From: Carpediemonas membranifera BICM | Lineage: Eukaryota > Protista > Fornicata | Assembly (NCBI GenBank): GCA_019828565.1 | Contig: JAHDYR010000069.1 | Coordinates: forward strand, 62,001-126,000 | Direction of reading: 5' to 3' | Length of the DNA: 64,000 nt | In this document: positions 6,361 to 60,500 of the stretch, in pieces | Layout: each line of letters starts with the position of its first letter | Position numbering within the stretch: position 1 is the first letter of the stretch | Notes under the pieces: generated by a model | Databases searched by the model: none | Seen by the model: only the letters and a program-made list of their open reading frames with translations | What the model was told of the DNA's origin: nothing | Position numbers and translations under genes: made by a program

Positions 6361-6417
6361 TGAGAGCCAGTGCAGTTTATGTAAACAGATCTACCTGCGC
6401 AAGCCAACAATGGCACA
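6361..6417 (+). repeat. 5' LTR of Gypsy-1 (57 bp)
   Basis: Exact match to 10986-11042. Followed by palindrome AATATCGATATT (6417-6428). Confidence 0.95.
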
Positions 6418-9400
6418 ATATCGATATTCTGCTTCTACAGAATCACACAGTGGTCTATCCGTGATAGACGTCTCTTCCCTCACAACGGGGTACGAGATCT
6501 GGTTACGGGAAGTCGGTAACGTCAAAAGACCCCGTTCTTTCCCCCACGCATTCACGGCAAAGACCCTCGAGCTTCTACAAGCCACATGGCGGCCCACCTC
6601 CACGTTCCCGACCTTCGAGTCGTTCTGGGACTCCCTTATCCCTGACGTGGTCTCGCAGGCACAACACGCCAAGCAAGAACCTGACAGACACGCCACGTCG
6701 TGCCGCGCAAGATACCGCGCGATCATCGACGCTCTGCAGGACGATCTCTTCTTGCTCTGTGCTGCAGCCGCCAACACCTATAAGGACAGCCCGCTTCTCG
6801 ACCCGGCGATGCGCCGGATGCAGGCTGTTTACGACCGCGCCGAGGCCGAGCTGAACGATAAGCTCGCCAGCCTCTGCACGGCCAGCCACGACCGCCACGA
6901 GGCGGACCCGGATGCGACCCTCACCTTCGCGACGCTAACGAACCCCCTGGACGACAAACCGGCCCGATCGGCCGCGGATGTCGCGAGAATCGTCAACTCT
7001 CTCCCGTCAGCGGCAACGGCCGCCCCCTCCGCCCCCGTGTCCGTGCGTGACCAGCTTCGCGCCGAGGCCAGGACCATCCTGCCTCACCTGTACCTTACCC
7101 TGATGCCAACACTCGACCGCGGTGCACGCCTCAAGGCCATCACAAGCAAGGGCACCCAACTGTACGGCCAGAACGCGGCCCACCGCCTTAACACTCTGCG
7201 CCTGCAGAAGGCGTGCGACGGGTACAACCCCGTCGTCGAGGCCGATGGCTACCATAAGATCCCCGACAGCGCCCTCCGCGCTGCGGTCCGGTCTGTCGCC
7301 CTCAAGGGATACGACGACGACGCGATCCCGCTATACGAGGCGCTGATCGAGCGGGATTCGGACGGCAACTGGCGTCCCGCCCGCGACTGCATAGACGCCC
7401 TCTCGACCCTCGAGACCGACCATCTCGGCCAGATCGTCGTCCCCTGGCAGGCCTATGCCGTGTCGACCAAGACGAAGCCGATCCCGGCCGACAACAAGGC
7501 ACCGCATGATAACAGTCAGTGCTCGAACAAGGACACCTCTGCTCGCGAGGGCCAGCCGCTGAAGCCGAAGGCCCACAAGGTCGAAGGCCAGGACCCGTTC
7601 AAGCAGTTTAAGGACAAGGAGCATTTCTACATCCCGAAGTCTTTCAATCGCTGGTGTGACAGGCATGGCTGGAACTCAAAGCATACAACCAAGGACTGCG
7701 GAGCGAACCAACGCGATGGCGCCGTCGGCGAGGTCCAAACGACCTCCATTCCCATACAGACAACCGTAACGGTCGCCGGAACCGTCCAACTTCCAGCCAA
7801 GCTCGACACTGGCGCAGATGTCTGCGTCATATCCGAGCACCTCGCCCCAAAGATACCAGGAAACATCCAATGGCGCGAGTCGGACCTCCGCCTGTTCGCC
7901 GCGGACGACCGCGTTATCTCCGTGGGCAAGATCGCCACCATGTCCATCACACTCCCTGGCATGGATGGCAAAACCGTCACGCTCGACTGGGACGTCCACA
8001 TGATCACAGGCACCAGCGACAGGATGCTGATCGGCAAGGACCTCCTCAGGCACATCGGCTACGTCCTCAACGACCGCCTACTGATACTCCCGTCCGAGAA
8101 GCCGGATGATAAGGACGATCTAGAAGAGCACAACATGATCGACGCCGACGTCTTCGAAGCGGCGTCAACCTCGGACTCGAAGCATTCGCTCGCCGTCACG
8201 ATCCCGGACGACCACGGCACCGAGTTCGCCAACAAGGTCCGAAGCATCGTCGAGGAGTTCGATGAGGTGTTCGACCCGGCTCTCCCGCCCGAAGGCAGCA
8301 AACTACAGCCTCACAAGATCGAACTCACACGCGATTTTCACCTCAAGTGCCGTCCTCGACAGCTTGTCGGAGAGGCTGGCTCAGCCGCCCTCTCCGAGAT
8401 CGAGAAGATGAAGAAGCTCGGCATCATACGAGACAGCCAGTCCGAGCACGCCAGCCGCCACACGATGGCAACCAAGAAGAACGGCGAACCCCGCTTCTGC
8501 GTCGCATTCAACGATCTTAACGACGCCACGAAGGACGACGCCTTTCCCCTCCCCGATCTGAGGGACCTGCCCCACGAAGCCGGCGGATGCTCTTACTTTG
8601 CATCACTCGATCTCCGGTCCGGATACTGGCAGCAGCTGATGGAGCCGGCCAGCATCCCCCTTACCTCGTTCGTAGTCCCCGGGCACCAATTCGAGTTCCT
8701 CAGGGTCCCGTTTGGACTTAAGAACGCCCCCTCCAAGTTTCAACGAGCGATGGAGGCCGTGCTAGATGGCATCCCCGGCCACCGGGTCTACGTGGATGAC
8801 ATATTCCTCTACGCACGGACCGAAGAAGGATTCCTCAACACCCTGAGACTCACCCTCCAGAGAGCCAAGGACAACCGCCTGCGCCTCCGTGCGGACAAAT
8901 GTACCATCGGCGCCGCCGAAGTGGAGGTCTGCGGATTCATCATCAACAGCTCCGGCCGCTCGGTGAGCCCAGGCCGCGTCGCCGCGCTGAAGGAGCTGCC
9001 CGCCCCCACCACCGTCACAGAGCTCAGACGCACGATGGGCAAGTTTAACCACCTCGCAAACTACCTCCCGCAACTCAGCTCAGCCACAGCCCCCCTCAAC
9101 GCCCTCCTCAAGGGGTCACCCAAGAAGCTAGACAAGCTCCCTTGGACTGAGGAACACGACAAGGCATTCGCGGCTCTGAAGGAGCTGTGCACCGACAACA
9201 AGGCATTGGCACTACCCAACCTGACCTGCAAGTGGACACTTGAGACAGACGCGTCCACAATCGCAGCCGGCGGAGTGCTGTGGCAACACGAGGGCGACAC
9301 GAAGAAACCCCTCGCGTACTTCTCAAAGACGTTCACAGAGACCCAACGCCGCTGGGCGACGGTCGAGCAAGAGCTCTACGCAGTCATATACTGCATCACC

Positions 9401-10957
9401 CGGCCAGAGTTTAGCCAGATTCTCAAGCTGAAGCCATTCACCGTACTCACAGATCACAAGAACATCGTGTGGATGATTCGCAAGGCTGAGGAAGGGACGC
9501 GCAAGCTCACGCGATGGAGACTCATCCTATCCGAGTACCCCTTCGACATCATGCATATCGCAGGGACAAATAACGTCGTCGCGGACGCCCTCTCCCGCCC
9601 CAGCGGCGCGGCGATCAGCGAAATCGCCAGCAGCACCCACCGCTTCGACATTCAGCAGGCCCACGCTGGAGCCAACGGCCATGCTTCGATCAAACAAACG
9701 ATCGCCCATCTCAAGGAAGCCGGCAAGACCTGGTCTTCCATGAACTCAGACGTCGCGGAGCACGTCGCGACTTGCCCAGTCTGCCAGAAGCTCAAATCCC
9801 ACCCCATCGCCAAGGCCCAGTGGCATACGACCCAGAAGACCCGCCCATTCGAGGCGGTGCAGATAGACACGCTCGGCCCGCTTCCAAAGACGAATGGCCT
9901 CGCTCACGTGATCGTGTTCATCGACGTCTTCAGCAAGTTCACTGTGCTCAAGCCGGTTGCGTCAACCTCGGCAGAAGAAGCCGCCGACGCGATGCTCCAG
10001 GTGTGGTCGCTCTTCGGCGCACCCAGCCTGATCCAGACAGACCAGGGAAGTCAGTTCAAGAACTCAACCATCGCCGCTCTCAACAAGAAGATCAGCCTGA
10101 ACCACAGGTTCTCCACGGCGTACCACCCACAGAGTAACGGCGTTGTCGAGAGAGTCAATGGGACCATCATGCGCAGACTGCGCGCCCTGCTACTAGACTC
10201 AGAAACGACCGACTGGCCCGCACTTATCCCAATCGTGCAACACATTATCAACACTTCGACACACTCGACTACCGGCTTCACGCCGTTCGAGCTGCTTTTC
10301 GGACACACGTCCGCGCTCACGGCCCTCCCGGAGTCACGCATCATCAGCGCCGCCAAGGCGACGCAAGACACACCTACCATCCAGGCCATTAACGCATTCC
10401 ACACCGACATACAGGCCATGCACGACGCAGCCCGCGCGAAGATCGCCGCATACGAGCGTCACAAGGCCGCACAAACCCAACCGGCGGACAACTTCGACTG
10501 GAAACTCGAACGCCTAGTGCTCCTGAGATATCCTCACAAGGCCCCATCCAAGATTCTGCCTCCAGTCCGCGGCCCGCTACAACTCCTCAGGGAAGGGAAG
10601 AGCCCCAACACATTCGTCCTCCGTGACCTCGTCACCAAGTCCGAGCTGCTCGTCCACCAGGACCGCCTCATTCGCTTCGACCCAGGCACAGCAGACCTCA
10701 AGACACTCGAGCGCATCGCCGCATACGAACAAGACGAACAACAAGTCTCCGCCATCGTCGGCCACCGCGAGCGCAACCGACGCCTCGAGCTCCTCGTCCA
10801 CTGGGAAGGCCTAGAAGACTCCGAGGACTCGTACATTCCGTATAACGCATATTACGACCGCCTCGCCGCCCTGGATGACTACCTACGCCTCAACCCAGGT
10901 CTCACGCCCCTCTTCGCACGTTACAAGCGGAAGTTCCGGGGCAATGGCCGCCGTTAG
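6410..10957 (+). CDS. Gag-PR-RT-RNaseH-IN-chromodomain polyprotein
   Basis: Zn knuckle WCDRHGWNSKHTTKDC, protease LDTGAD, RT LDLRSGYWQ/YVDD, RNaseH ETDAS...TDHKN, integrase HHCC and DDE (QIDT, QTDQG, NGVVE), chromodomain LLVHWEG. The first element-encoded ATG lies in the LTR. Confidence 0.95.
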   Translation: MAQYRYSASTESHSGLSVIDVSSLTTGYEIWLREVGNVKRPRSFPHAFTAKTLELLQATWRPTSTFPTFESFWDSLIPDVVSQAQHAKQEPDRHATSCRARYRAIIDALQDDLFLLCAAAANTYKDSPLLDPAMRRMQAVYDRAEAELNDKLASLCTASHDRHEADPDATLTFATLTNPLDDKPARSAADVARIVNSLPSAATAAPSAPVSVRDQLRAEARTILPHLYLTLMPTLDRGARLKAITSKGTQLYGQNAAHRLNTLRLQKACDGYNPVVEADGYHKIPDSALRAAVRSVALKGYDDDAIPLYEALIERDSDGNWRPARDCIDALSTLETDHLGQIVVPWQAYAVSTKTKPIPADNKAPHDNSQCSNKDTSAREGQPLKPKAHKVEGQDPFKQFKDKEHFYIPKSFNRWCDRHGWNSKHTTKDCGANQRDGAVGEVQTTSIPIQTTVTVAGTVQLPAKLDTGADVCVISEHLAPKIPGNIQWRESDLRLFAADDRVISVGKIATMSITLPGMDGKTVTLDWDVHMITGTSDRMLIGKDLLRHIGYVLNDRLLILPSEKPDDKDDLEEHNMIDADVFEAASTSDSKHSLAVTIPDDHGTEFANKVRSIVEEFDEVFDPALPPEGSKLQPHKIELTRDFHLKCRPRQLVGEAGSAALSEIEKMKKLGIIRDSQSEHASRHTMATKKNGEPRFCVAFNDLNDATKDDAFPLPDLRDLPHEAGGCSYFASLDLRSGYWQQLMEPASIPLTSFVVPGHQFEFLRVPFGLKNAPSKFQRAMEAVLDGIPGHRVYVDDIFLYARTEEGFLNTLRLTLQRAKDNRLRLRADKCTIGAAEVEVCGFIINSSGRSVSPGRVAALKELPAPTTVTELRRTMGKFNHLANYLPQLSSATAPLNALLKGSPKKLDKLPWTEEHDKAFAALKELCTDNKALALPNLTCKWTLETDASTIAAGGVLWQHEGDTKKPLAYFSKTFTETQRRWATVEQELYAVIYCITRPEFSQILKLKPFTVLTDHKNIVWMIRKAEEGTRKLTRWRLILSEYPFDIMHIAGTNNVVADALSRPSGAAISEIASSTHRFDIQQAHAGANGHASIKQTIAHLKEAGKTWSSMNSDVAEHVATCPVCQKLKSHPIAKAQWHTTQKTRPFEAVQIDTLGPLPKTNGLAHVIVFIDVFSKFTVLKPVASTSAEEAADAMLQVWSLFGAPSLIQTDQGSQFKNSTIAALNKKISLNHRFSTAYHPQSNGVVERVNGTIMRRLRALLLDSETTDWPALIPIVQHIINTSTHSTTGFTPFELLFGHTSALTALPESRIISAAKATQDTPTIQAINAFHTDIQAMHDAARAKIAAYERHKAAQTQPADNFDWKLERLVLLRYPHKAPSKILPPVRGPLQLLREGKSPNTFVLRDLVTKSELLVHQDRLIRFDPGTADLKTLERIAAYEQDEQQVSAIVGHRERNRRLELLVHWEGLEDSEDSYIPYNAYYDRLAALDDYLRLNPGLTPLFARYKRKFRGNGRR

Positions 10958-10985
10958 CTGGCTAGCTTCGCCTTGAGGAGGGAAG

Positions 10986-11042
10986 TGAGAGCCAGTGCAG
11001 TTTATGTAAACAGATCTACCTGCGCAAGCCAACAATGGCACA
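10986..11042 (+). repeat. 3' LTR of Gypsy-1
   Basis: Identical to the 5' LTR, preceded by the PPT and followed by the ACTT TSD. Confidence 0.95.
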
Positions 11043-11046
11043 ACTT

Positions 11047-12490: not shown

Positions 12491-13024
12491 TTAATTCCAC
12501 CAGTTCTCAGCCATCTCAGCCAGCTTGTCCATGGTGAGCTCATCGCTGCTCCCCTCGTCCTCGCTGTCCCTGGGCTGGTCGCCGGTTCCGTCCGACTGCT
12601 TGGGTTGACCGTCCCCAGCTCCGTCCTTGAGTCTGCAGATTTCCTCTTGCAGCTGAGCTATCGTTCTGTCCTTGTCCTCCAGCTCATTCTTGAGCTCGTC
12701 CACACGCTGCTTGCCCTTCTGCATCAGGAGTGTCTTCGTGTCCTTTGTCAGCTGGCGGGCCGCGTCTCTCTCCTCCTCCAGTCTCAGGTTCCTCTCCTTG
12801 AGGGTTTCCAGCTGCACGTGCAGCAAGTCCTTGTCGAGCTTGGCTCTCTTGGATCCGCCTGCAGGGGCTGCCTTCCTCTTCTCGGAGGTATCCTGGGTTC
12901 TGTCTGGGGGGGGTTGACTGTCCGATTGGCCCCAGTTCTCACGGGAGGGCAGTTGGGTTGCCTGGGGGTTGCCTCCATCCGGCTTCGCCTGTTCGATCCG
13001 CAGAGTCTGCTCCGAGTTTCCCGG
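12491..13024 (-). pseudogene. 3' half of ORF1 of element A (coiled coil)
   Basis: Continues the 17888-18611 ORF across the CCGG TSD. Frameshift at the G run near 12906-12913, then heptad-rich LETLKERNLRLEEERD... Confidence 0.6.
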
Positions 13025-16000
13025 TGTGACCCTAAACTGCGGGAGTTGGTTGCATAAAACTCATTCGTAACACGGCACAATATCGATATTACCGGTGAAA
13101 TGAAGCAATTCACGACTAATGATCCAGAAAGCGCAATCCAGGCGCTCGCGGATTACACCACTGCAATTATCCACGAGAGAAACCCAACTTCTTTCATCCA
13201 AACGCTCACAGCGGACACGGTCGCGAAGTTAAAGCGTGATTGGCGTCCGACAGCGAAATTTCCCACTCTTGAGAGCCTCCAGACCTCCATTATGTCTGAC
13301 GCCGAAGCCCGAGCTCAGGCCCGTTCGGACGAGGCTCCGCAAGCTATATCCCACAATCCCACCGCAGATGCAATCGCCAAGCGTTTCGCTGCTGCCTTTG
13401 AGGCGGCCTGCAAGCGAGCGCAGTACGCAGAGTGTGTGCGGGTCTCTTCAAACTTCAAGGACCCGGCCCTCACCAGCCTGACAAAGGAGTCAATCTCGGC
13501 AGAGATACAACGCGCAATCCCGGAGGCCACTGAGAAGGCCAGGACATTCATCACCTCGTACATGAAGGACCCCGCGGCCAACAGATGGTCCGACCTCTTC
13601 AGCGCCGCAACCCCGACTGTCCCCGTGCCTGACGGGACCGACATGACACTCCCAGATTTCTCTGACAAGGTCCCGGAGCCCACCATAGATGAGAAGCCCG
13701 ACCTGGCCGCCTGGCCAAAGCGTGCTGATTTCCCCGACGTTTACGCTTACCTCCGCGCCGAGGCAAAGGCGATCATCCCCTACATCGTTTATACGCTCCT
13801 ACCGACCCTCGACATGGGATCGAGACTGAAGATGGTGCGCGACAAGGCATCCGGCCTTAGATTCTTCGGCCCAGCCGTCGAGCACCGACTCGCCGTCTTC
13901 AAGCTACGTAGGATCCTCAACGCTTACGATCCATGCGTCCCAGACATCGAGGCACTAACCTACAACTCGACCGAGCGCTTACTGGGGTCGATCTTCCTCA
14001 AGGGCTATAGCAAGGACGCCGAGGCTCTTTACGAGGACATCATCGAGGACCCAGCCGAGTCAATCGACGATCTTCTTTCTCGCCTCGAGAACCTCGACGT
14101 CGATCACGACGAACGCGTTATTGTCCCGTGGCGGGCGTTCGCGGTAACATCCCAACCCGCCGACCAGAAAGACAGCGGCCGTCGCGCCCCTGGCAAGCAA
14201 AAGCCGACAGTACTGCCCCATACAAGCGATCCCTATCTCCAGTTCAAAGACAAGCACAAGTATGCCATCCCACAGCACTTCAACAAGTGGTGCAAGTCTC
14301 ATGGGTGGAACAGTAACCATACGACAGAGTCATGCAGGTTCCTCGCACGGCAGAAGGACAACCAGTCCAAGGGCACCTCCGGCTCCTCTCAGCCGCGGAA
14401 GAACGACCAGAAGCAGACCAGCGGTACGCAGTCCGACCGTCGGGCCGGCAACATGTTCCTGAGGGACTCCTCAAAGCTTCGCAACTCGCGCGGCCAGCGC
14501 GACATCCATGAAGTCGACAACAACGCCTCAGATGACGCCGAGTCCGAGGACGAAGGTGACGTCTATGAGGTGGGGGCTGTTGAGATCGACAACGACCCCA
14601 TCAACGTCCCGGCCACGATCAACGGTGTCCAAATCAAGACGAAGTTCGATATCGGAGCCTGCGTCTCAGTCATCTCGGAGCCCGCACTAGCGAAGGTCCC
14701 GAATTACCAGCTCATCGACACCTCAGTCGAGCTCTTCGGCGCCGGCGACGAGGTCATCTCCATCGGTAAGGCCGCAAAGGTCGACATCACTCTCCCGTCT
14801 ATCGATGGCAAGACCGTGCAGGCCACCGCATTGCTGATGGTGATCCGCGCCAAACGCCGAAAGGTCCTGATCGGCCGCGACCTCCTCAGAAGGTTGGGCT
14901 ACCTCATGAACGACAGACTGCTGATCCCGTCATCCGCCACCATCTCCGACAACGACAATCTGCCTCCACACCCGTATCTCGACTCCTGCACAGATGAGAT
15001 TGATGTTGATAACGAGTGGAAGAAGGTCCGAATCCCTTACGATGACAATCCAGACCTCACTAAGTGGCTCGAAGGCTTCCTATACGAACGCCGCGAGCTC
15101 TTCGGCGAGCTGCCAGAGGACGGCAGCGAGTTGCGTCCACACAAGATCACCCTGAAGCCTGGCGACCACAGGCTCCCGAAGGCAAGACCACGCCCCCTTA
15201 AGGGTTCCCAAGCGTCCAGCGCCGCCGCTGAAATCGACAAGATGCTCCAACAATTAGTCATCCGCCCAAGTGACTCGCCGTACTCATCCCCACACGTGAT
15301 GGCGAAGAAGAAGAACGGTGAGGACAGGTTCTGCGTCGCGTATAACGTTCTGAATGAAGCCACCGAAGACGATCGCTACCCGACACCAGATATCCGCTCC
15401 TTCGTCCATGAGGCAAGCGGCTGCTCACTCTTCGGCACGCTCGACCTCCGAAGCGGCTACTGGCAGCAACGTATGGACCCCGACAGCGTCTCACTCACCG
15501 CCTTCACTATCCCAGGCGGTCATTACGAGTTTCTTCGTACCCCCTTCGGGCTCAAGAATGCCCCGGCCAAGTTCCAGAGAGCGATGGACGAGGTGTTGGA
15601 AGACTGCAAGAGCTCCAAAGCCTACGTCGACGATATCTTCACTTACTCGCACACGGAGGAAGAGTTCAAGAGCGCCATCACGGATCTCTTCGATCATCTA
15701 CTGGCGGCCAACGTCAGACTGAAGGCCGACAAGTGTGCCCTCGGCCTCTCCGAGGTTGAGGTGTGCGGCTTCATCGTTAACGAGATGGGCAGATCCGTTG
15801 CCCCCGCTCGAGTCCAGGCCATCCGCGACCTCTTTCCTCCGACCACCACGTCGGAACTCCGTCGATCCCTCGGCAAGTTCAACTACTTGTCGAATTACAT
15901 TCCCCATCTCGCCGACGCCGCAGCACCTCTCAACCGGCTGCTTAAGGGCTCTCCGGGGAAGTCGTCCCCCGTGGCCTGGGGCGCCGAGCAGGACGCCGCT

Positions 16001-17887
16001 TTCGCTAAGATGAAAGACCTGGTCACCGAACACACGGCGCTCGCCCTCCCAGACTTAGACAAGCCCTGGACCTTGGAGACCGATGCCTCCTCAGTAGCGA
16101 TCGGCGGGGTCCTATGGCAGGGCGAAGGAGTTGAGAAGGTTCCCCTCGCTTTTTATTCCAAGACCTTGGACGAGACTCAGCAAAGGTGGTCGACCGTCGA
16201 ACAGGAGCTTTACGCGATCATCCACTGTGTAACTCGACCGGAGTTCTCAGCCCTCCTTAAGATTAAGCCGTTCTCTCTCAGAACCGATCACCGGAACCTT
16301 ATTTGGCTCCTGAGAAAGACGGACGAGGAGGGCACGAAAAAGCTTACTCGCTGGCGCCTGACAATGACCGAATACCCCTACTCCATCGCCCACATCAAGG
16401 GCGTCCACAACGTCGTCGCCGACTCGCTGTCCCGTCCTAGCAGCGTCCCAGAGGACCGAGACGACCTCAAGGCCGCTATCGAACAGGTCTCCAGTTCTCA
16501 CCGTCACCTCATCAACCAGGCCCACGCCGGTGCACAGGGCCACGTCAGCGTCGCTCAGACGATGGCAAATCTCCGCAACGCCGGGCAGTCTTGGCCCGAC
16601 ATGAAATCGGACGTCCGGGAGACCCTCAGAAGTTGCGCCGTCTGCCAGAAGGTTAGACCCCCTGCCCGCGAGAAGACGAAGTGGCACTCCACGCAGCGAC
16701 TCAAGCCCTTCGAGACGGTCCAGCTTGACACAATAGGCCCCCTTCCGGAAGAGGCCGGCATGTCCTACATCATCACGATCGTGGATGTCTTCTCCAAGTT
16801 CACGATCCTCCGTCCGGTCGCTACTACAAAGGCCGAAGAGGCTGCAGCAGCGATGCTGGATGTGTGGTCCACGTTCGGAGTCCCAAAGGAGATTCAAACC
16901 GACCAGGGCACTCAATTCCGTAACGCCCTCATTGCCGAGTGTAACGCCATCATCAGTCTTCAGCACAGGTTCTCAACCCCTTACCATCCGGCCAGCAACG
17001 GAGTCGTTGAACGACTCAACGGCACGATCATGTCTCGCATGAGAGCGCTCCTCCTAGACGCAGAGGACGGCAACTGGCCCGCCTATTTACCGCTCGCTCA
17101 ACACGTCATCAACTCTACCCGCCACGCCACCACCGGTCGCTCCCCTTTCGAACTGCTGTTCGGCAAAGAATCGACGCTACGGGTCGCCCCGATCGCTCTG
17201 GCAAACGCCACGAAGAGCTGCACCCCTGGGAGCGTTGATGAAGGTGAGATTGTCCGCTTCCAGGAGGACGTAGCCGCTCTACAAGCCCTCGCCCGCGTCA
17301 AGATTCGCGCGTACGAGGCGCGCAAGGCCAAGGCCACAGCAGACACTCATGCGTGGGAGAGAGAACAATACGTTCTCCTGCGCTACCCGGGCAAGCCCCC
17401 GGCTAAGATCTACACCCCCCTGCGCGGACCCTTCCGCATGGAGGGGAAGGGCGAACACCCGAACACCTACCGCGTCCGTGACCTCGTCACAAGATGCGTC
17501 AGCACGGTCCACGCCGACAGACTGGTCCGATTCGAGACCGATTTATCCGACACCGAGCTCGAGCGGATCGCCGCTTTCGAGCAAGGCGAACAGCCCGTCA
17601 AGGAGATCGTCGGTCACAAGAAGAAGAAGAACGGCTCATTGGAGCTCCTCATCCGTTGGGAAGGCCTCACACCCGACGAAGACTCCTATGTACCCTATAA
17701 CCGGTACTATGACCAGCTAGCGGCTCTCGATGATTACCTCGTCGCTCATCCAGAGCATGAAGCCGCGTTCGCCGCCGCCAAGAAGAAGTTCCGCAGTTCC
17801 GGGCGCCGTTAATGCGTCCGCATGGGGGGAAGTGTGACCCTAAACTGCGGGAGTTGGTTGCATAAAACTCATTCGTAACACGGCACA
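13025..17887 (+). mobile_element. Gypsy-2: full-length chromodomain Ty3/Gypsy LTR retrotransposon with 55-bp LTRs
   Basis: Identical LTRs at 13025-13079 and 17833-17887, CCGG TSD, PPT GGGGGGAAG, and palindrome AATATCGATATT at 13079-13090. Confidence 0.97.
13100..17812 (+). CDS. Gag-PR-RT-RNaseH-IN-chromodomain polyprotein
   Basis: WCKSHGWNSNHTTESC, FDIGA protease variant, YVDD, ETDAS, HHCC/DDE integrase, GPF motif and chromodomain LLIRWEG. Collinear with Gypsy-1. Confidence 0.95.
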   Translation: MKQFTTNDPESAIQALADYTTAIIHERNPTSFIQTLTADTVAKLKRDWRPTAKFPTLESLQTSIMSDAEARAQARSDEAPQAISHNPTADAIAKRFAAAFEAACKRAQYAECVRVSSNFKDPALTSLTKESISAEIQRAIPEATEKARTFITSYMKDPAANRWSDLFSAATPTVPVPDGTDMTLPDFSDKVPEPTIDEKPDLAAWPKRADFPDVYAYLRAEAKAIIPYIVYTLLPTLDMGSRLKMVRDKASGLRFFGPAVEHRLAVFKLRRILNAYDPCVPDIEALTYNSTERLLGSIFLKGYSKDAEALYEDIIEDPAESIDDLLSRLENLDVDHDERVIVPWRAFAVTSQPADQKDSGRRAPGKQKPTVLPHTSDPYLQFKDKHKYAIPQHFNKWCKSHGWNSNHTTESCRFLARQKDNQSKGTSGSSQPRKNDQKQTSGTQSDRRAGNMFLRDSSKLRNSRGQRDIHEVDNNASDDAESEDEGDVYEVGAVEIDNDPINVPATINGVQIKTKFDIGACVSVISEPALAKVPNYQLIDTSVELFGAGDEVISIGKAAKVDITLPSIDGKTVQATALLMVIRAKRRKVLIGRDLLRRLGYLMNDRLLIPSSATISDNDNLPPHPYLDSCTDEIDVDNEWKKVRIPYDDNPDLTKWLEGFLYERRELFGELPEDGSELRPHKITLKPGDHRLPKARPRPLKGSQASSAAAEIDKMLQQLVIRPSDSPYSSPHVMAKKKNGEDRFCVAYNVLNEATEDDRYPTPDIRSFVHEASGCSLFGTLDLRSGYWQQRMDPDSVSLTAFTIPGGHYEFLRTPFGLKNAPAKFQRAMDEVLEDCKSSKAYVDDIFTYSHTEEEFKSAITDLFDHLLAANVRLKADKCALGLSEVEVCGFIVNEMGRSVAPARVQAIRDLFPPTTTSELRRSLGKFNYLSNYIPHLADAAAPLNRLLKGSPGKSSPVAWGAEQDAAFAKMKDLVTEHTALALPDLDKPWTLETDASSVAIGGVLWQGEGVEKVPLAFYSKTLDETQQRWSTVEQELYAIIHCVTRPEFSALLKIKPFSLRTDHRNLIWLLRKTDEEGTKKLTRWRLTMTEYPYSIAHIKGVHNVVADSLSRPSSVPEDRDDLKAAIEQVSSSHRHLINQAHAGAQGHVSVAQTMANLRNAGQSWPDMKSDVRETLRSCAVCQKVRPPAREKTKWHSTQRLKPFETVQLDTIGPLPEEAGMSYIITIVDVFSKFTILRPVATTKAEEAAAAMLDVWSTFGVPKEIQTDQGTQFRNALIAECNAIISLQHRFSTPYHPASNGVVERLNGTIMSRMRALLLDAEDGNWPAYLPLAQHVINSTRHATTGRSPFELLFGKESTLRVAPIALANATKSCTPGSVDEGEIVRFQEDVAALQALARVKIRAYEARKAKATADTHAWEREQYVLLRYPGKPPAKIYTPLRGPFRMEGKGEHPNTYRVRDLVTRCVSTVHADRLVRFETDLSDTELERIAAFEQGEQPVKEIVGHKKKKNGSLELLIRWEGLTPDEDSYVPYNRYYDQLAALDDYLVAHPEHEAAFAAAKKKFRSSGRR

Positions 17888-17891
17888 CCGG

Positions 17892-22643: not shown

Positions 22644-22838
22644 GATCTGGCTCTCTGGCGTTTGTCATGGCTTGGTTTATTGGAAGGCGAGGCTGGTGAG
22701 TAAAGTTACTTATAGGAAACTGGTATTGGTTGGCGTTCGAGGCTGTCCTTGGTGTCTGGGATTCGTGGCGAACCCATACCCGAAGAAATTTCGTCGAAAA
22801 CGCAGCTTAAACACACCGACGCGTATCTCCCCCGGTTC

Positions 22839-38300: not shown

Positions 38301-38306
38301 GTCGGC

Positions 38307-38362: not shown

Positions 38363-39364
38363 CGGTTGCAAGAAAAAATGAACTCGACGATGAGCCGGAG
38401 CTGGATCTTCAAAGTGGTATGGTAGTACTTGGCTATACCTAAGCAATACGCATGCGCAGTATCAAACTTTAAATCCTGCTAGAAAAAAGTAACATAGGGA
38501 CAAATTGGAATTGAGAGTTGAGACTCAAAAAACGGGCAGGGGGGAGGAAATGGTCCATAGGTACGCCTTATGGGTCGCTTCCTCCCCTCTGCCCCTTTTT
38601 AATCGCAAAATCGATTTGCCGGATTTGACACACGTTTGATGTGATCAAAATGGATTTGATAGAAATGGGTCCAGATCATGCAGTTGGCCATCCTGAAGCG
38701 CTAGGGCGGCCTGCAGACCGCAGCAATGCCTCTGCTGAATGCCCTTCATGCCTGACGGACAGGACGCGCGTTGACTATAAAGGACTGCATGTTTCGGCAT
38801 CAGAAGAAGGTGTGGAATACAACGGAGTCATCGCCGAACCGCTCCGACCAAGTCGGTTATTAGGACATCGCGTTCAGACGCCCTCTGCAATTACCAAGTC
38901 AATAGATGGGAGTCGACCTGATCAGCACGTCATTTGGGGCCTCAGGTGACACTATAGCTGAGTTTGGCTGGGCGCTGCTGCGGCCATGGGCCGCTAGCGC
39001 GCTGATTGGCTCGTTTCTCCTCGTATAGCTGCTGTAGAGGTCTGATCTGAGCCTCGTTATAATAGTCTGCCCGAGTAGAGTCCAGCCATACCATAAATGT
39101 CCCCCAATCTCCCCCTCCCGGTCGCTCATACCTCCAAAATGGCCTATATTCCCTGTAGGAAGCTTAATAAGGGCGGATTTCCCATAAGTCGTGGCATAGA
39201 GGGAAGAGGCTTTGTACACAGCCCCCTGATCGTGGGTTCAATTTTCACCGGGAGCAAATAGGTCTTTTTGGCAGACAACGCCGCTCCGAGCTCTATTGCG
39301 CCCAGCGGTGCCTGCAGCGGCCAGAACAGAGCTAGAATTCGGGTGATTTTTAATCTCGATCGAA

Positions 39365-44669: not shown

Positions 44670-44795
44670 GTCGATTCCAGCAATGCGCGAAGAACAAGAA
44701 CCTTGGGAACAACCATGGGAGCACCAGACGTACTGTTTACGAAGGAAGATGGCAGGCCAGGGTCCCCGGTCGATTCACCATGGCCTCTTCAGCGT

Positions 44796-50700: not shown

Positions 50701-53700
50701 CAGTTGATAATCACTCGCCATTTACTTCTGGTGCTTTTCCTGCTCTCTCTTCTCCATCACGTCGTCATACTCGGCCCTCGTCAGTCTCACAGTTGTCATC
50801 CCGGCATCACGGATGTGCTCAAAGGCCTCAACGGGCAGCTTCGGCATCCCGTCCTCGCTGTCGCTGCTGCTGCCCAAGTCTGACTCGCTCTCGTGATAGC
50901 GGCGAAGGCGAATGCGTCTGCTGGGCTCCCTGGTCTTCATAGCGTCATAGAGCGGAGCGAGCCCACTTCCATTGGCCCCGCTACGGACACCCTCATCGGT
51001 ATCTCTCTCAGACATATCACACTCAACCTGTTGTGACTGAACAAATGACAGGTTGTCGACGAGGCTATCCTCGGCATCGCTGTCTGAACTCTCCTCATCC
51101 TCCCACTCTCCTTCCAGCATCTCCAACCCGGCCTCATCGTCAAACTCGCCCTCCACTGCGGTCTCCGGCATCTCTGCCTCGCCAGCTGTCTCGTCAAACA
51201 GCGCCTCATCGTCAGACTCACCCTCCCCGTGTCGACCCCATCGGGATTACGCTGGTCGTGGAGCTGGACCATCCTCATCCTGAGCTTTTTGTAAAGCCAC
51301 CAGGTCGGCAGAGCTTAAGGTAATCCTGGCGCCCTCATCCTGGCGCCTCATCCCTGGCGCCGTCATCCCTGGCGTCCTCTCCCTCATAAATCTGAATCAT
51401 CTTCTTGTCTTGCTCCCGATGTTGTCATTGCTGTTTTCGTGTCCACAAGCATTCCAGTCTCATTATAATGTTTATTCAGTACCAAATCATCCTTTAGTGA
51501 CGGGCATTCTCATCTGCATTGCCGAGAAAAAGAGTTGATGTTGATTAGATGGTGACGAATGCATTACCGGACATTTGACGCGCACAACCTGCTTAATACT
51601 GCATAAAAGCATCGCTGATCGCTTTCTCTTCTGTTCTTCAACGCCCAAGGAGCGGCTTCCAGGTCGGCAACGGTTGCCGACCTGGACCCGTGCAGTTTAT
51701 GCTTTTTCGGCCAACCGACGAAGTCAAGCTTGGCCAAGACACATACTGTGTACACGGACCCTGGCAGGCTAGTTACGCCGCTCAGCCTCTGCATCCAGTT
51801 GATAATCACTCGCCATTTACTTCTGGTGCTTTTCCTGCTCTCTCTTCTCCATCACGTCGTCATACTCGGCCCTCGTCAGCCTCACAGTTGTCATCCCGGC
51901 ATCACGGATGTGCTCAAAGGCCTCAACGGGCAGCTTCGGCATCCCGTCGTCGCTGTCGCTGCTGCTGCCCAAGTCTGACTCGCTCTCGTGATAGCGGCGA
52001 AGGCGAATGCGTCTGCTGGGCTCCCTGGTCTTCATAGCGTCATAGAGCGGAGCGAGCCCACTTCCATTGGCCCCGCTACGGACACCCTCATCGGTATCTC
52101 TCTCAGACATATCACACTCAACCTGTTGTGACTGAACAAATGACAGGTTGTCGACGAGGCTATCCTCGGCATCGCTGTCTGAACTCTCCTCATCCTCCCA
52201 CTCTCCTTCCAGCATCTCCAACCCGGCCTCATCGTCAAACTCGCCCTCCACTGCGGTCTCCGGCATCTCTGCCTCGCCAGCTGTCTCGTCAAACAGCGCC
52301 TCATCGTCAGACTCACCCTCCACTGCGGTCTCCGGCATCTCTGCCTCGCCAGCTGTCTCGTCAAACAGCGCCTCATCGTCAGACTCACCCTCCCCCGTGT
52401 CGACCCCATCGGGATTACGCTGGTCGTGGAGCTGGACCATCCTCATCCTGAGCTTTTTGTAAAGCCACCAGGTCGGCAGAGCTTAAGGTAATCCTGGCGC
52501 CCTCATCCTGGCGCCTCATCCCTGGCGCCGTCATCCCTGGCGTCCTCTCCCTCATAAATCTGAATCATCTTCTTGTCTTGCTCCCGATGTTGTCATTGCT
52601 GTTTTCGTGTCCACAAGCATTCCAGTCTCATTATAATGTTTATTCAGTACCAAATCATCCTTTAGTGACGGGCATTCTCATCTGCATTGCCGAGAAAAAG
52701 AGTTGATGTTGATTAGATGGTGACGAATGCATTACCGGACATTTGACGCGCACAACCTGCTTAATACTGCATAAAAAGCATCGCTGATCGCTTTCTCTTC
52801 TGTTCTTCAACGCCCAAGGAGCGGCTTCCAGGTCGGCAACCGTTGCCGACCTGGACCCGTGCAGTTTATGCTTTTTCGGCCAACCGACGAAGTCAAGCTT
52901 GGCCAAGACACATACTGTGTACACGGACCCTGGCAGGCTAGTTACGCCGCTCAGCCTCTGCATCCAGTTGATAATCACTCGCCATTTACTTCTGGTGCTT
53001 TTCCTGCTCTCTCTTCTCCATCACGTCGTCATACTCGGCCCTCGTCAGCCTCACAGTTGTCATCCCGGCATCACGGATGTGCTCAAAGGCTTCAATGGGC
53101 AGCTTCTGTATCCCGTCCTCGCTGTCGCTGCTGCTGCCCAAGTCTGACTCGCTCTCGTGATAGCGGCGAAGGCGAATGCGTCTGCTGGGCTCCCTGGTCT
53201 TCATAGCGTCATAGAGCGGAGCGAGCCCACTTCCATTGGCCCCGCTACGGACACCCCTCATCGGTATCTCTCTCAGACATATCACACTCAACCTGTTGTG
53301 ACTGAACAAATGACAGGTTGTCGACGAGGCTATCCTCGGCATCGCTGTCTGAACTCTCCTCATCCTCCCACTCTCCTTCCAGCATCTCCAACCCGGCCTC
53401 ATCGTCAAACTCGCCCTCCACTGCGGTCTCCGGCATCTCTGCCTCGCCAGCTGTCTCGTCAAACAGCGCCTCATCGTCAGACTCACCCTCCCCCGTGTCG
53501 ACCCCATCGGGATTACGCTGGTCGTGGAGCTGGACCATCCTCATCCTGAGCTTTTTGTAAAGCCACCAGGTCGGCAGAGCTTAAGGTAATCCTGGCGCCC
53601 TCATCCTGGCGCCTCATCCCTGGCGCCGTCATCCCTGGCGTCCTCTCCCTCATAAATCTGAATCATCTTCTTGTCTTGCTCCCGATGTTGTCATTGCTGT

Positions 53701-53969
53701 TTTCGTGTCCACAAGCATTCCAGTCTCATTATAATGTTTATTCAGTACCAAATCATCCTTTAGTGACGGGCATTCTCATCTGCATTGCCGAGAAAAAGAG
53801 TTGATGTTGATTAGATGGTGACGAATGCATTACCGGACATTTGACGCGCACAACCTGCTTAATACTGCATAAAAGCATCGCTGATCGCTTTCTCTTCTGT
53901 TCTTCAACGCCCAAGGAGCGGCTTCCAGGTCGGCAACCGTTGCCGACCTGGACCCGTGCAGTTTATGCT
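44796..53969. repeat. Tandem array of about 8.3 near-identical ~1097-bp units
   Basis: The marker hairpin recurs at 45072, 46171, 47268, 48365, 49464, 50562, 51658, 52827 and 53924. One unit has a 72-bp internal duplication. Most of the unit is an inverted copy of about 62408-63360. Confidence 0.97.
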
Positions 53970-54152
53970 CGCAACCAAAGTTGGTCACAGTTTCAATGAT
54001 ACGTGTTAACAATGCAACATAGACGGGTAAACACTGGTGTGAACTAATATATCCTCGCTAATTCACGTGACATGAGTGATGTTGCACTTGTGACTATGAA
54101 CAGACTCCTAGTTAATAGTACCGATCAAATTACCGAATACTTCATGTCATAT

Positions 54153-56491: not shown

Positions 56492-57581
56492 TTCTTCTCT
56501 TCGTTATATCCCAATAATGGACATATAACAGAGATGAGAAAATTGCCAGTAACCGTAGGCAACGGGGTGTCGGAAACGTTATACCATACAAACGGGGGAT
56601 ATAATCGCTCCGAAAACATCCATTATGTGGACTGAATGGCGATATAACGTATGGGGAGTGATCCGGCGAGCTTTCGGGCGGTGCAGGCTAAGACACACCA
56701 AGTCTGTGGTGCTATAACGTACCTCGGGACGCACTGTGGAGGCCCCTAGAGTACTCGGTCATGGCATGTCAGACCAAGGGTCCCTCAAATCTGGCCCCAT
56801 TCAGGATGCTCCCCCTAAACGTTCCGTTGCAAGCGTCTGACGGGCGTTCTCTGGATACCGACCAAGATGGAGGTCACGTGGATCAACGGACGATAATTGC
56901 GGTATTCTGGCCATGCCTGGTACTTTCAAATCATCTATACTAATCAGTGCTCCATTTATAGTTCATATCGTATGGTCCTGGTGGACTTATAGTTGTTGAT
57001 GTTGTTTAGGGATTATTGTTGCTTTAGTGATGCTCTGCGCCCGCTTACTGATGTTTCTTAGTGTTGTACACATGCCTACTACGTTAAAGCCGCCAGTATT
57101 CTTTCTATTCTTAAGTTCGCCATTTCAATCTCGTTGCGAGCATAAAGTGCGCGAATGCGCGGGTCAGTTCCCCCGTTTTCAGCGAAGCTGATGCGACAAC
57201 ACAGAGGCAAGCGAATCCTTTCACCTCAGGCGTTGCCAAGAGGCCGTTGTCTGCCATGAACACTAAGCAGTGATGAGATATACGGATTTCAGACTTTCTG
57301 CCTGCACGACCTCAAATGTTGACTCCCCTCGGCACCGAAAAGGCACCTATATCCATGAATACCCTCTACAGTGATGTATCTACCCGATAAATGGATTTCA
57401 AATTTGTCGGGTCTCATGATAAATGGATTTCAGACTTTCGTACTGTTGGCCATCTGAGAATTTTTGAACGACCTCTAGAATATTTTGAAATGCAAGAACG
57501 TGCCTATGGCACTCTTTTGTACCCCTGAACACGGTTTGACCACTGTTTTGGGCATTTGGAGAGATTCGAATTTTTGTGCAT

Positions 57582-60500
57582 TGTGAGCAGTTTAGGGTAC
57601 CAACTACACGTGCGAACCCTATAAACAGTTTGTTGTGAAACCTTTAACCTCGACAAGATCACAGTGTACACTCATCTAATGTCCGACTACATACCAAGAC
57701 CTTTCTTACTAACACTAGAAGAACAGGCGTTCACCAAGTTCCGATCGTCCTACCGTGCGTATCGAGCTCAACGCCTTGACGATCCTCTTCTCCATCCGAC
57801 TGCCCTGATGGATCCTACGCCTCTTCTTCTCATCACACGCCGTCTCAACGACAATCCGGCCGATCTTCCGGCGGATACTGTCTTGGACACAGTCTACCAA
57901 ACATTCTATAGCCCCCGCAGTAACGTTCAAGCACTAGCCAAGCTGAAGTCGCTGCGGTGCGCCCGAACGGGCCCCTTACCAACGCCTGCACAGCTTCTCA
58001 ACCATATCGAACGCTTCGAAACTATCCGGAGCTCGTTCACAGCCGACGTCACACCACCAGAGAAGCTAATGGTGAAGGCATACCTGCAGGCACTTCCAGA
58101 TCCTCTTGCGGAGCGTATCCGCATGGAGCAGCCAGATGACGTCGCAGAGGCGCAGGACCACGCCATTGATGAACTGGAGGAACTCCTTAACCTCCAGTCG
58201 CTCCTGCAGCCGGAACCGGCCCAGCCAGCTGGTAAGCGCCCGACTCCCGGCGCCGCCGCTGGGGCTAGACTACCCCAACGATCGTCTGCCCCTGCCACGG
58301 CTGTGGCCACACGGGCCACATCCGCCCCAACTGTCCCTATCAAGGACACAGAGATTTCTTCCGCTCTGGCGTGCGCAAGACTCCCATCCAGGGTCCGCCA
58401 GTCAAGCGCGAAAAGGCGAATCTGGCCGCCACTGATCACGACGGCCTCATCTGTCGCCAAGCCACTCTCTATGTTCCCATCAACGAGAGTACTGCCACAG
58501 AGGTCTGTGCAGTACTTGATACTGGTGCAACTATTGACCTCATCTCCCCCACGATAGCCGAATCATTTATCCAACGTGGCGCTCTTCCAGCCGTCGCTAA
58601 CGTTCGTTTGGATACCGCGAACGGTCCAGTTTTCATCAAGAGAGCTGTGTTCCTTGTCATGCTCATTGATGGCGTTCGCTCCATTCGGCCATTCTACATC
58701 CTCCCCTCTATGTCGGAGGATCTGATCCTCTCAAACTCCACTATCCAAGATCTCTCCCTCTCCTTGGCCCCAACGGCCGATGAGGAGACGATCGATGAGG
58801 ATCACGCACCCGTCACTCGCCTAGATGAAGGAGAGCAGCTCCCTGACGTAGGTTCAACCGCGTCTGCCCTCCCGCCAGCCATCAGAGCCGTCTATGATGA
58901 GTATGCCGAAGTCTTCACCAGCCGTCCCCACCCAGACGGAGCAGACGTTCCCCCTATGGAGATAGAGCTGCTTGAGGGCGCCACACCGGCTGCTCAACCG
59001 CCGCGTCGTCTATCCCCTGCAATCCAGCAGGAGGTTGATGACCAGGTGAACGAGCTCCTTGCTCAAGGAATCGTCCGCCCCTCACGCTCTCCCTGGGCTG
59101 CACCCGTCTTTACTGTCCCCAAAAAGGGCGGTGCCCGCCGCCTCGTCGTGGACTACCGTCAGGCGAATGATCGCATCAAGCAAGTCAGTTTCCCACTTGC
59201 ACACCAAGAAGAGCTGATGTCGCATCTCGCAGGCCAACGTTGCTTTGCGACGTTAGATCTCGTTAGTGGATACCACCAGATCCCACTGTCCGAACGTTCC
59301 ATTCCGATAACCGCGTTTTCAACTCCAACCGGCCTTTATGAGTATACGCGCGTTCCATTTGGCGTCAAAACGGCTCCTGCTACCTTCCAGGCCATCATGA
59401 CCCAATTGCTCTCCAAGTTTGTCGGAACTACGTGCGAGGTCTTCATAGACGACATCATCATTCACGCATCAACCACGGACGAACTAGCTACACGCCTAGC
59501 TGAGATCCTTGCCGTTCTCAAGGAACATCGCTTCGTCCTTCATCCCAGCAAGTGCTGTCTGTACGCTGAGCAGGTGGAATACCTCGGCCATATCATCTCC
59601 CCCGAGGGAATCCGCATGTCCCCCGCCCGGGTCAAGGCCGTTCAGGCCATGGCTCCTCCTAAGGACATCAAGACCACGCGGGCCTTCTGTGGAGCGATGA
59701 ATTATTTCCGTAGGTTCATCCCCAACCTCAGCTCGATCCTACAGCCACTATACGCCCTCACCTCTGGGAAGGTCCGGTGGAAATGGACAAAGGAGGCCCA
59801 GGCTGCTTTCGAAGAGAGCAAGAACCTCGCCGCCCACACGCCGTGTTTAGCCTTCCTGGACTACTCTGCCCCAATTATCGTTCGCACCGATGCTAGCGAC
59901 ATTGGCTGTGGAGGCGTGCTCCTCAACGTCAAGGATGGCGTTGAACACGTAGTCTCCTACTGTAGCCACGCATTCACCACCGCAGAGCGCAACTGGGCTG
60001 TCATCGAAAAGGAAGCCTTCGGCATCTTCTTCGCTGTTGTCGAGAAGTACTCCCCTATCTCCTCGGCCACTCGTTCGCCATACAGACAGACCACCGTAAC
60101 CTAGTTTATATGCGCCGTTCTACCACACCCAAGGTCGTCCGCTGGAACCTCAGACTCCAAGAGTTCGACTTTGTCGTTGAACACATCTCTGGCGTCTCCA
60201 ACACCCTCACTGATGGCATATCCAGGTGCTTCATCGTCCAACCCCCGAGAATGCCCCTACACTCCAGCGACTTATCATAGCCTCTGTCCACAATGCCGTC
60301 GAGGGACACCTCGGCCGAGAGGCTACACTCCGCCTCCTTAAGGAACGAAACCTTGACTTCCGTGGAATGAGCAACGCTGTCGCCGAGTATATCAAGGCTT
60401 GCCCGATATGTCAGAAGAACGCCAGACTTCCCAAGCGCCTTCAGACAGGCCTCCGCCCTACCATGGGCGTCACCCCACGCTCCTGCTGGGCGTTTGATAC

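Follow-up and report, generated by a model that had tools for sequence, protein, structure and literature searches.

Family-specific perfect palindromes at the primer-binding site of compact chromoviruses in Carpediemonas membranifera and their possible role in priming by paired element RNAs

In very compact gypsy-type elements of Carpediemonas membranifera and a few other microbes, the primer-binding site (PBS) is a family-specific perfect self-complement of 10–16 nt whose start falls on the terminal CA of the 5' LTR or one to two bases within it, and this palindrome is a trait of the whole branch. The start of reverse transcription is a defining step of every retroelement and, to our knowledge, the established primers of LTR elements are only two, a tRNA of the host and the 5' end of the transcript itself. 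Judging from the sequences, the RNA that primes reverse transcription in the elements described here is most likely their own, probably that of a paired sister copy.

The analysis follows up an earlier note on a 64-kb stretch of contig JAHDYR010000069.1 (hereafter the window), in which five LTR retrotransposons had been described as carrying a palindrome instead of a tRNA-type PBS. All five palindromes were recovered at the positions given there, each at a true 5' LTR end. Three of the five elements (A, B, and E) are complete, while those at 37353 and 37950 are nested 5' fragments (Table 1). The described overlap with the terminal A of the LTR holds at four sites; at 37950 the palindrome takes in three LTR bases instead of one.

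Elements A, B and E are intact chromoviruses with LTRs of 55–82 bp, as delimited by self-BLAST and reading of the ends. Within each of them the LTR pair is 100% identical with TG...CA termini, a 4-bp target duplication flanks the element, a GGGRAAG polypurine tract precedes the 3' LTR, and the final A of the 5' LTR is simultaneously the first base of the palindrome. Pfam searches identified RVT_1, RT_RNaseH, rve, Integrase_H2C2 and Chromo, the latter with scores under the curated cut-off. The PR-RT-RNase H-IN order with a chromodomain at the integrase C-terminus fits Ty3/gypsy chromoviruses. In element A, frame analysis places an in-frame ATG at 6410, within the LTR. Element B has a 100% identical copy elsewhere in the Carpediemonas genome; in public run X1 (contigs, possibly RNA) it is matched only at 17218–17380 and 17490–17813, in pol, by two short contigs that include no transcript end or joint. 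With regard to the two fragments, the 37950 element is inserted in the gag of the 37353 element, and no 3' LTR of either was found within the window. Both junctions are confirmed, since in other genome copies the match extends to ...CA or ...ACA and stops right there, as expected of 3' or solo LTRs. For the LTR end at 37952, five genome copies agree and two of them diverge straight after ACA. The palindrome AGTATTAATACT of the 37353 element also occurs in an unrelated family at G000 C34.

Table 1. Features of the chromoviral elements in the window (positions count from its first letter).
Feature	Position	Strand	Remarks
Element A, 5' LTR, 57 bp, TG...CA	6361–6417	+	100% repeat of 10986–11042; target duplication ACTT 6357–6360
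Element A, primer-site palindrome AATATCGATATT	6417–6428	+	begins on final LTR base
Element A, gag-pol polyprotein (PR, RT, RNase H, IN, chromodomain)	6410–10957	+	Pfam, ORF list, frame analysis
Element A, polypurine tract GAGGAGGGAAG	10975–10985	+	
Element A, 3' LTR	10986–11042	+	target duplication ACTT 11043–11046
Element B, 5' LTR, 55 bp	13025–13079	+	target duplication CCGG 13021–13024
Element B, primer-site palindrome AATATCGATATT	13079–13090	+	
Element B, gag-pol polyprotein, 1570 aa (PR, RT, RNase H, IN, chromodomain)	13100–17812	+	Pfam, ORF list
Element B, polypurine tract GGGGGGAAG	17824–17832	+	
Element B, 3' LTR, 55 bp	17833–17887	+	target duplication CCGG 17888–17891
37353 element (5' fragment), primer-site palindrome AGTATTAATACT	37353–37364	+	LTR end = 37353, confirmed by other genome copies
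37353 element, gag fragment	37371–37856	+	broken by 37950 element
37950 element, probable 5' LTR, ~100 bp, TGTAGTG...CCACA	37853–37952	+	3' end 37952 confirmed, start 37853 inferred
37950 element, primer-site palindrome ACAGTAATTACTGT	37950–37963	+	covers three LTR bases (ACA)
37950 element, gag fragment	37968–38312	+	
Element E, 5' LTR, 82 bp	57582–57663	+	target duplication GCAT 57578–57581
Element E, primer-site palindrome AGTGTACACT	57663–57672	+	
Element E, coding region in 3 frames: gag 57679–58557, PR-RT-RNase H 58371–60104, IN-chromodomain 60226–61512	57679–61512	+	Pfam, ORF list, frame analysis
Element E, polypurine tract AGAGGGGAAG	61511–61520	+	
Element E, 3' LTR, 82 bp	61521–61602	+	target duplication GCAT 61603–61606

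The earlier note had suggested surveying further LTR families for self-complementarity and covariation, and both are found. A perfect palindrome is present at 18 of 18 resolved LTR junctions, 13 from Carpediemonas (representing 12 families, with A and B counted as separate families) and five from other assemblies, and the changes between families are compensatory. Every other resolved chromovirus family of Carpediemonas, where LTR lengths range from 55 to 130 bp, has its own perfect palindrome of 10–14 nt in the same position, and relatives in five other sources carry palindromes of 10–18 nt at the same place. Other sources provided three further palindromic junctions in addition to the 18; the sequence sets covered beyond Carpediemonas include GCA_002919055.1, GCA_040384245.1, SRR16126880, SRR13076573 and JGI samples. 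Besides A, B and E, four families were delimited by two LTRs and a target duplication, and in these, too, the palindrome adjoins the LTR end or overlaps it. The palindromes found number at least 22 different sequences. The Carpediemonas junctions C33a, C1b and C33b were left out of the 18-junction set; that of C1b is apparently disrupted by an opposite-strand element bearing its own palindromic junction. The palindromic site is confined to one clade (tree of elements made with FastTree). Relative L068 shows no palindrome and has a long leader, possibly with an ordinary TGG site, and relative L100 is uninformative as its sequence begins within gag.

Palindromes of at least 10 nt are not generally enriched in the window (62 versus 61.4 in local shuffles), so that a palindrome at a given base is a roughly 1-in-1000 event. 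A chance origin is rejected, given palindromes at five of five junctions in the window and at all 18 overall. The earlier suggestion that structure rather than sequence is conserved is borne out: symmetry is retained, sequence is not, and the changes between families compensate each other. The differences of AATATCGATATT from AGTATCGATACT, AATGTCGACATT and AGTATTAATACT are double and symmetric. In genome-wide censuses, sites of the pattern GGCACANTATCGATANT have Watson-Crick symmetry in 53 of 56 cases (reversed-pattern control, 0) and those of CAGTNTTAANACT in 45 of 49, with three pair types; the four broken sites of the latter are exactly half-steps between palindromes. For the frame ACAGT-N6-ACT, the core is palindromic in 43 of the first 100 matches listed, against an expectation of 1 in 64, and 11 different cores occur. 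Many copies are young, and conservation within a family is therefore partly inheritance; it is the covariation between families that constitutes real evidence. The same data weigh against the idea that the palindrome acts as double-stranded DNA bound by a dimeric protein, for example as a promoter element or as a site for integrase or a host factor. Dimeric binders typically have palindromic DNA sites and tiny LTRs might need promoter help from downstream, but such a protein would have to accept a site in which symmetry and not sequence is conserved, with three of the four Watson-Crick pair types at one position pair and 11 cores in one frame. In addition, the R repeat requires transcription to start within the LTR. 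We regard this explanation as very improbable.

By definition, the minus-strand primer anneals where sequence adjoins the 5' LTR end. Since the palindrome adjoins or overlaps that end, it holds the position of the PBS and, as had been claimed, replaces a PBS of tRNA type, of which no signature is seen. The five sites in the window indeed do not begin with TGG, and the same is true of all 18 junctions. The best complement to 15 distinct host tRNAs with CCA is 5–8 nt, equal to shuffles. A complement inside the LTR (80 nt upstream, Tf1 type), which the earlier note had also failed to see, is limited to 3–6 nt, again equal to shuffles, and the same values were obtained for 80 nt downstream (GalEa hairpin type). 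A search of the Carpediemonas genome for copia reverse transcriptase (PF07727) gave no match, with the control of the same search also at 0. A host RNA, whether a fragment from within a tRNA or some other small RNA, could still be imagined as primer: copia-type elements can use internal tRNA fragments, and the 15 species compared are part of the host set. Apart from the shuffle-level result for those 15, at least 22 sites would need as many host RNAs with uninterrupted palindromes, which is impossible from tRNA stems, and a fixed host partner would not predict compensatory evolution of both halves. This leaves a host primer with hardly any credit.

A stronger competitor is that the palindrome acts solely as a signal for dimer linkage, packaging or translation switching, with priming achieved by a protein (we know of no LTR retroelement primed in this way), by a non-templated start or by an RNA whose pairing spans very few bases. 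Palindromes are the classic dimer-initiation motif of retroviruses, and here the site lies at or beside the gag ATG, which is found 1–43 nt past the LTR end and in two cases within the palindrome. For MMTV, a palindrome is reported in the PBS region (PMC8096270). Yet the U5 edge is set by the primer, so the sequence adjoining the LTR must be the primer site, and the 0–43 nt between LTR and ATG contain no second candidate. We consider a role restricted to such a signal unlikely, while giving it more weight than any other alternative discussed here.

The earlier note had left open whether the palindrome pairs with itself as a fold-back or between two RNAs. The second option is favored and the first disfavored, because pairing is perfect through the center of every palindrome, whereas the loop bases of a hairpin would be free to vary. 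An intramolecular snap-back, in which a cut follows the palindrome and the 5' fragment of the RNA, folded into a small hairpin, primes on its own U5, is consistent with monomer folds, in which part of the palindrome forms a mini-hairpin, and with the hairpin proposed for GalEa elements (PMC5445492). However, a palindrome of 10–12 nt would provide a stem of merely 3–4 bp; its central four bases would form the loop, but are self-complementary in 18 of 18 junctions and nearly all census sites; and a downstream partner like CHSeq2 was not found. Snap-back priming thus appears rather improbable. The palindrome–palindrome duplex is part of the minimum-energy homodimer for 13 of 18 leaders, a weak indication as palindromes pair by construction. 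A search for a read-through product (LTR end, palindrome and inverted LTR end) yielded no perfect case; family A showed an imperfect 18-nt symmetry in that search.

The chromovirus Tf1 primes with its own RNA once RNase H cuts an RNA duplex (review PMC7175516). For the Carpediemonas elements we propose, with about even confidence, a trans variant of this self-priming in which the site would self-pair between two element RNAs and a cut in the duplex would supply the primer. The pairing we infer to be RNA–RNA between two molecules; the cut and the enzyme making it are speculative. Two element RNAs would first pair via the site to form a symmetric RNA duplex of 10–16 bp. The element's RNase H would subsequently cut the duplex in one strand, at its 3' edge or close to it, in the way that Tf1 RNase H cuts its primer duplex. 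This would leave a 3'-OH that remains base-paired with the partner RNA beside U5 and would prime minus-strand strong-stop DNA. One genome would hence lend its 5' piece to the other in place of a tRNA, and a single signal would serve dimer linkage and priming. As the gag ATG lies near the palindrome or within it, the paired RNA would in addition pass from translation to replication. Dimerization, priming and this switch may tentatively be seen as combined on one signal of 10–16 nt, a third priming mode for LTR retroelements, to which we attach somewhat less than even confidence. Plus-strand synthesis would copy the primer, which is a sense version of the site, and one cycle would then suffice for a single mutation to appear mirrored in the other half. 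Such mirroring would account for the fast, always symmetric emergence of family-specific "private" codes as well as for the half-step and chimeric sites in the genome.

The proposed cycle meets several difficulties. One template would be lost if genomic RNA were cut, and a workable cycle needs an asymmetric cut. A primer as long as R-U5-PBS would give plus-strand strong-stop synthesis no obvious stop. The palindrome takes in the A of the LTR and sometimes CA or ACA; with a cut exactly at the palindrome's 3' edge, the terminal A would stem from a retained ribonucleotide, or else the cut would lie 1–3 nt further in.

A clade-wide, family-specific self-complementary site points to a further solution for priming that needs no host RNA. 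If the model is true, genome pairing would be tied to priming and the site of each family would be a private code; the model also suggests, in a form open to testing, how the palindrome of fungal GalEa elements might be explained. Those tools for LTR annotation that require a tRNA PBS will miss or down-rank elements of this kind, a problem that is worsened by very short LTRs (55–82 bp).

Given the GalEa elements, a palindrome at the LTR end is not wholly without precedent, and the statement in the earlier note that no description was known has to be withdrawn. In these fungal Ty1/copia elements a "Conserved Hairpin Site" of open mechanism replaces the tRNA PBS (Donnart et al., 2017, BMC Genomics 18:410, PMC5445492). 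This site is a perfect palindrome after the 5' LTR when the final A of the LTR is counted, ACTGATCAGT or ACTAATTAGT, and is kept across families (PMC5445492). The palindrome of Carpediemonas likewise lies directly at the 5' LTR and includes its final A. The two systems differ in polyprotein order (Ty1/copia versus the gypsy order of chromoviruses), in the number of sequences (essentially two versus at least 22 palindromes) and in LTR length (138–311 bp versus 55–130 bp in Carpediemonas). Moreover, a complementary partner, CHSeq2, located 12–41 nt downstream with a fixed A/A mismatch, suggests a hairpin in GalEa, whereas these chromoviruses have no such partner. Skipper chromoviruses of dictyostelids have lost the TGG PBS and lack an LTR complement, for which their authors suggest novel self-priming (PMC5006619), but they have a polypyrimidine stretch in place of a palindrome. 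Dimer initiation in retroviruses (HIV-1 DIS, MMTV) similarly relies on a short palindrome in the 5' leader to pair two genomic RNAs; there, the palindrome is located in the loop of a hairpin or next to a regular tRNA PBS, without supplying the primer. Tf1 and its sushi relatives (Tf2, Maggy, Skippy, Cft-1, sushi-ichi) likewise belong to the chromoviruses, lack a TGG PBS and use their own RNA as primer, as is proposed for Carpediemonas. Haag, Lin and Levin reportedly found in 2000 (J Virol 74:7164) that Tf1 is able to prime in trans between two mRNAs. The RNase H of Tf1 generates the primer by cutting an 11-bp RNA–RNA duplex (PMC7175516). In that element the PBS is not palindromic and pairs with the 11 nt at the start of the transcript, which lie within the LTR, whereas the Carpediemonas site, without an LTR complement, pairs only with itself.

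At all five LTR junctions of the window, a perfect palindrome occupies the 5' LTR end, the position at which a tRNA primer-binding site (PBS) normally sits. The earlier note had described these palindromes from the sequence alone; the LTR ends are now set by LTR pairs in the three complete elements (A, B and E) and by other genome copies in the two nested fragments (palindromes at 37353 and 37950). None of the five sites begins with TGG, as had been stated. The described overlap with the terminal A of the LTR holds at four sites, whereas at 37950 the palindrome begins three bases inside the LTR, and of the five elements only A, B and E are complete, the other two being 5' fragments. Palindromes of at least 10 nt number 62 in the window versus 61.4 in locally shuffled sequence, approximately one per kilobase. 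Since both frequencies are equal, an exact start at a junction has a chance of about 1 in 1000 per element, and a chance origin of the junction palindromes was rejected.

Elements A, B and E (Table) have 5' and 3' LTRs that are 100% identical, TG...CA termini and a purine tract ending in GGGAAG or GGGGAAG before the 3' LTR. All three encode protease, RT, RNase H, integrase and a weak chromodomain (Pfam), a domain set that identifies them as chromoviruses. Their LTRs (6361-6417, 13025-13079 and 57582-57663) measure only 55-82 bp in autonomous, apparently recently active elements and are, to our knowledge, among the shortest known. Each carries an AT-rich block (e.g., CAGTTTATGTAAAC, GCATAAAAC or CCTATAAACAG) some 30-40 nt before the LTR end, which may act as initiator, poly(A) signal or both; R would then perhaps span 10-20 nt. 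The gag ATG lies 1-43 nt past the LTR end, and in family A an in-frame ATG is located within the LTR. For both fragments, the LTR ends are confirmed by other genome copies, in which the match stops at ...CA or ...ACA, as it would in a 3' or solo LTR. The gag fragment of the 37950 element ends abruptly at a short inverted repeat resembling a hairpin (38290-38420; TAGATAATCTAGGG ... CCCTAGATTATCTA), which may be a small inserted DNA transposon. Two non-LTR retrotransposon ORFs (1932-6283, minus strand) lie immediately upstream of the insertion site of element A; the usual LINE order places the endonuclease ahead of the RT, and since the order here is reversed, they may belong to separate elements. 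ORFs of 320-330 aa adjoining the tandem array of the window have no Pfam match.

Table. Features of the window and primer sites of related elements
Feature	Position	Strand	Palindrome	Details
Non-LTR ORF	1932-3050	-		endonuclease-RT-type Exo_endo_phos_2 domain match
Non-LTR RT ORF	4364-6283	-		RVT_1 domain match
Element A	6361-11042	+		LTRs 57 bp, target duplication ACTT; self-BLAST and reading of ends
Element B	13025-17887	+		LTRs 55 bp, target duplication CCGG; self-BLAST and reading of ends
1798-aa ORF	22749-28145			largely periodic repeats (42 and 63 nt); from 23400 to ~27000, 57 overlapping 300-nt repeat copies
Inverted repeat pair	29956-30870 vs 35423-36322			915 bp, 91% identity; brackets Sec1-family gene (32417-34240) and an adjacent ORF
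gag fragment, 37353 element	37371-37856	+		broken by LTR of second element
Probable LTR, 37950 element	37853-37952	+		inserted in gag of 37353 element
gag fragment, 37950 element	37968-38312	+		downstream of that element's probable LTR
Tandem array	44600-54000	+		~nine to ten copies of ~1097-bp unit, 98-100% identity
Element E	57582-61602	+		LTRs 82 bp, target duplication GCAT; self-BLAST and reading of ends
Single inverted copy of ~1097-bp unit	62443-63360			8 kb downstream of array
Family L007/L008			AGTATCGATACT	LTR 66 bp; both LTRs, 4-bp target duplication
Family C1a			AATGTCGACATT	LTR 83 bp; both LTRs, 4-bp target duplication
Family C4			AGTGATCACT	LTR 61 bp; both LTRs, 4-bp target duplication
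Family C50			AGTGTTAACACT	LTR 130 bp; both LTRs, 4-bp target duplication
Four families			AGTTTTAAAACT, AGTGAATTCACT, AGTATTAATACT, CAGTAATATTACTG	5' side only; order ...ACA, palindrome, nearby ATG
GCA_002919055.1			CAATTTCGAAATTG	
GCA_002919055.1			ACAATGGATCCATTGT	after 57-bp LTR; gag ATG inside palindrome
GCA_002919055.1			CAATAATATTATTG	
GCA_002919055.1			AAGTGATCACTT	
GCA_040384245.1			AGTAATTACT	preceded by ...GTCACA
SRR16126880 contig			GATTAAAAATTTTTAATC	18 nt
JGI metagenome contig			AGTTAATTAACT	LTR ~300 bp
SRR13076573 contig			AATATTAATATT	LTR ~150 bp, end GGCACA

A protein search of the whole Carpediemonas membranifera genome returned many chromovirus copies with 40-100% identity to B, and for each identity class junctions were examined in short sequences surrounding representative copies. 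The junctions of six Carpediemonas families are defined from the 5' side only, two of them (37353 and 37950) backed by other genome copies. No TGG-site family occurs among those examined, three junctions not being located. Palindromic junctions also occur at regular intervals of 3944, 1351 and ~2167 bp (genome G000, C1:899865-911708, C1:1570834-1573549 and C6:749416-753763), suggesting elements in tandem arrays with single LTRs in common; the short-period arrays may be non-autonomous derivatives retaining LTR and palindrome.

Proteins 31-45% identical to B were found in other sources. The DNA of one such locus, L062, has no match in the Carpediemonas genome, and its assembly thus represents a different organism. 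The relative L068, with a long leader, lacks a palindrome. Among 21 polyproteins in a quick FastTree, all palindrome-bearing elements form a single clade (local support 100), apart from the clade holding L068 and metazoan gypsy elements. Given midpoint rooting and a sequence set with no named reference elements, this placement is only indicative that the palindrome marks a clade and not only one host. In GCA_002919055.1, a tyrosine-recombinase (Phage_integrase) ORF adjoins a chromovirus (L067:1-711), indicating that this assembly also contains DIRS- or Crypton-like elements.

It is symmetry rather than sequence that is kept at the site, as the earlier note had supposed. Between related families, the changes come in symmetric pairs, at positions 2 and 11 (AATATCGATATT to AGTATCGATACT), at positions 4 and 9 (AATATCGATATT to AATGTCGACATT) or at the two central bases (AGTATCGATACT to AGTATTAATACT), and three whole-genome pattern censuses, scored from matched letters, support the same view. 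The pattern GGCACANTATCGATANT matched 56 sites, 53 with A..T or G..C, two with A..C and one with G..T, and its reversed-pattern control zero sites genome-wide. For CAGTNTTAANACT, 49 sites comprise A..T (33), T..A (8), G..C (4) and four broken pairs (T..C twice, A..A, G..T), which are exact half-steps between the three palindromes. Among the first 100 of 748 matches to ACAGT-N6-ACT, 43 have a palindromic core (11 different cores), against an expectation of 1 in 64. Constancy within families is partly inheritance, as many copies are young; it is the compensatory changes between families that truly argue for selection on base pairing.

The position of the minus-strand primer defines the end of U5, and the sequence abutting the LTR is consequently the primer site. 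Its longest complement was scored for 18 junctions, each against shuffles. A Tf1-type complement in the 80 nt upstream, a span that takes in the entire LTR at almost every junction, reached 3-6 nt, in agreement with the earlier note, and a GalEa CHSeq2-type complement in the 80 nt downstream also 3-6 nt, neither above shuffles. For host tRNAs, a partial set of 15 distinct species plus CCA, from 30 tRNA loci of the genome, gave 5-8 nt, not above shuffles. No tRNA stem-loop can accommodate an uninterrupted palindrome of 10-16 nt, and equally many host RNAs would be required for the different sites, of which there are at least 22.

The only detectable partner is the site itself and its halves co-evolve, which points to sense-sense pairing of element RNA. 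Such pairing could be intramolecular, yet the loop bases of a hairpin would be free to vary while pairing is perfect through the palindrome centre in every case, and a palindrome of 10-12 nt would leave a stem of only 3-4 bp; a duplex of two molecules is favoured for these reasons. The calculated duplexes range from -9 to -24 kcal/mol, and the palindrome-palindrome helix lies within the predicted minimum-energy homodimer of 13 of the 18 leaders, which is weak support because palindromes pair by construction.

We give an even chance to priming by a trans version of Tf1 self-priming. Two packaged element RNAs would pair via the palindromic site, and the element RNase H would cut one of the paired strands, either at the 3' edge of the helix or slightly inside it. 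The cut 5' fragment would prime strong-stop synthesis on the U5-R of the partner RNA, whose own site would remain intact for use in the second strand transfer. The plus strand would copy the primer, a sense copy of the site, and a single mutation would return as its mirror image; repair of the mismatched DNA would yield a symmetric double mutant within one cycle. The mirror-copy evolution that we infer fits the half-step, apparently chimeric sites of the GGCACANTATCGATANT and CAGTNTTAANACT censuses and the many family-specific sites, all of which ordinary stepwise mutation explains too. Pairing would, in addition, block translation, as the ATG adjoins the site or lies within it.

Trans priming in Tf1 is said to have been described by Haag et al. 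in 2000. In Tf1, RNase H cuts an RNA duplex (review PMC7175516). Tf1/sushi elements resemble the Carpediemonas-type elements in superfamily and in the idea of self-priming, but have a PBS complement in the LTR that the latter lack. Skipper chromoviruses have also lost the TGG site, with a polypyrimidine stretch instead of a palindrome (PMC5006619). The literature searched contains no account of a palindromic primer site for gypsy elements or for Carpediemonas. The earlier note knew of no palindrome in the place of a PBS, but one is already published: the Conserved Hairpin Site of the fungal copia element GalEa lacks a tRNA PBS, has a 9-bp box that is palindromic counting the final A of the LTR, and fits no known model according to its authors (PMC5445492). 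This is the nearest published description, though from a different superfamily than the Carpediemonas gypsy elements; the GalEa box is almost invariant and has a complementary second box downstream, whereas Carpediemonas-type sites have many sequences and no second box. The palindrome elements probably belong with the tRNA-independent, self-priming LTR elements, among which they may represent a distinct mechanism.
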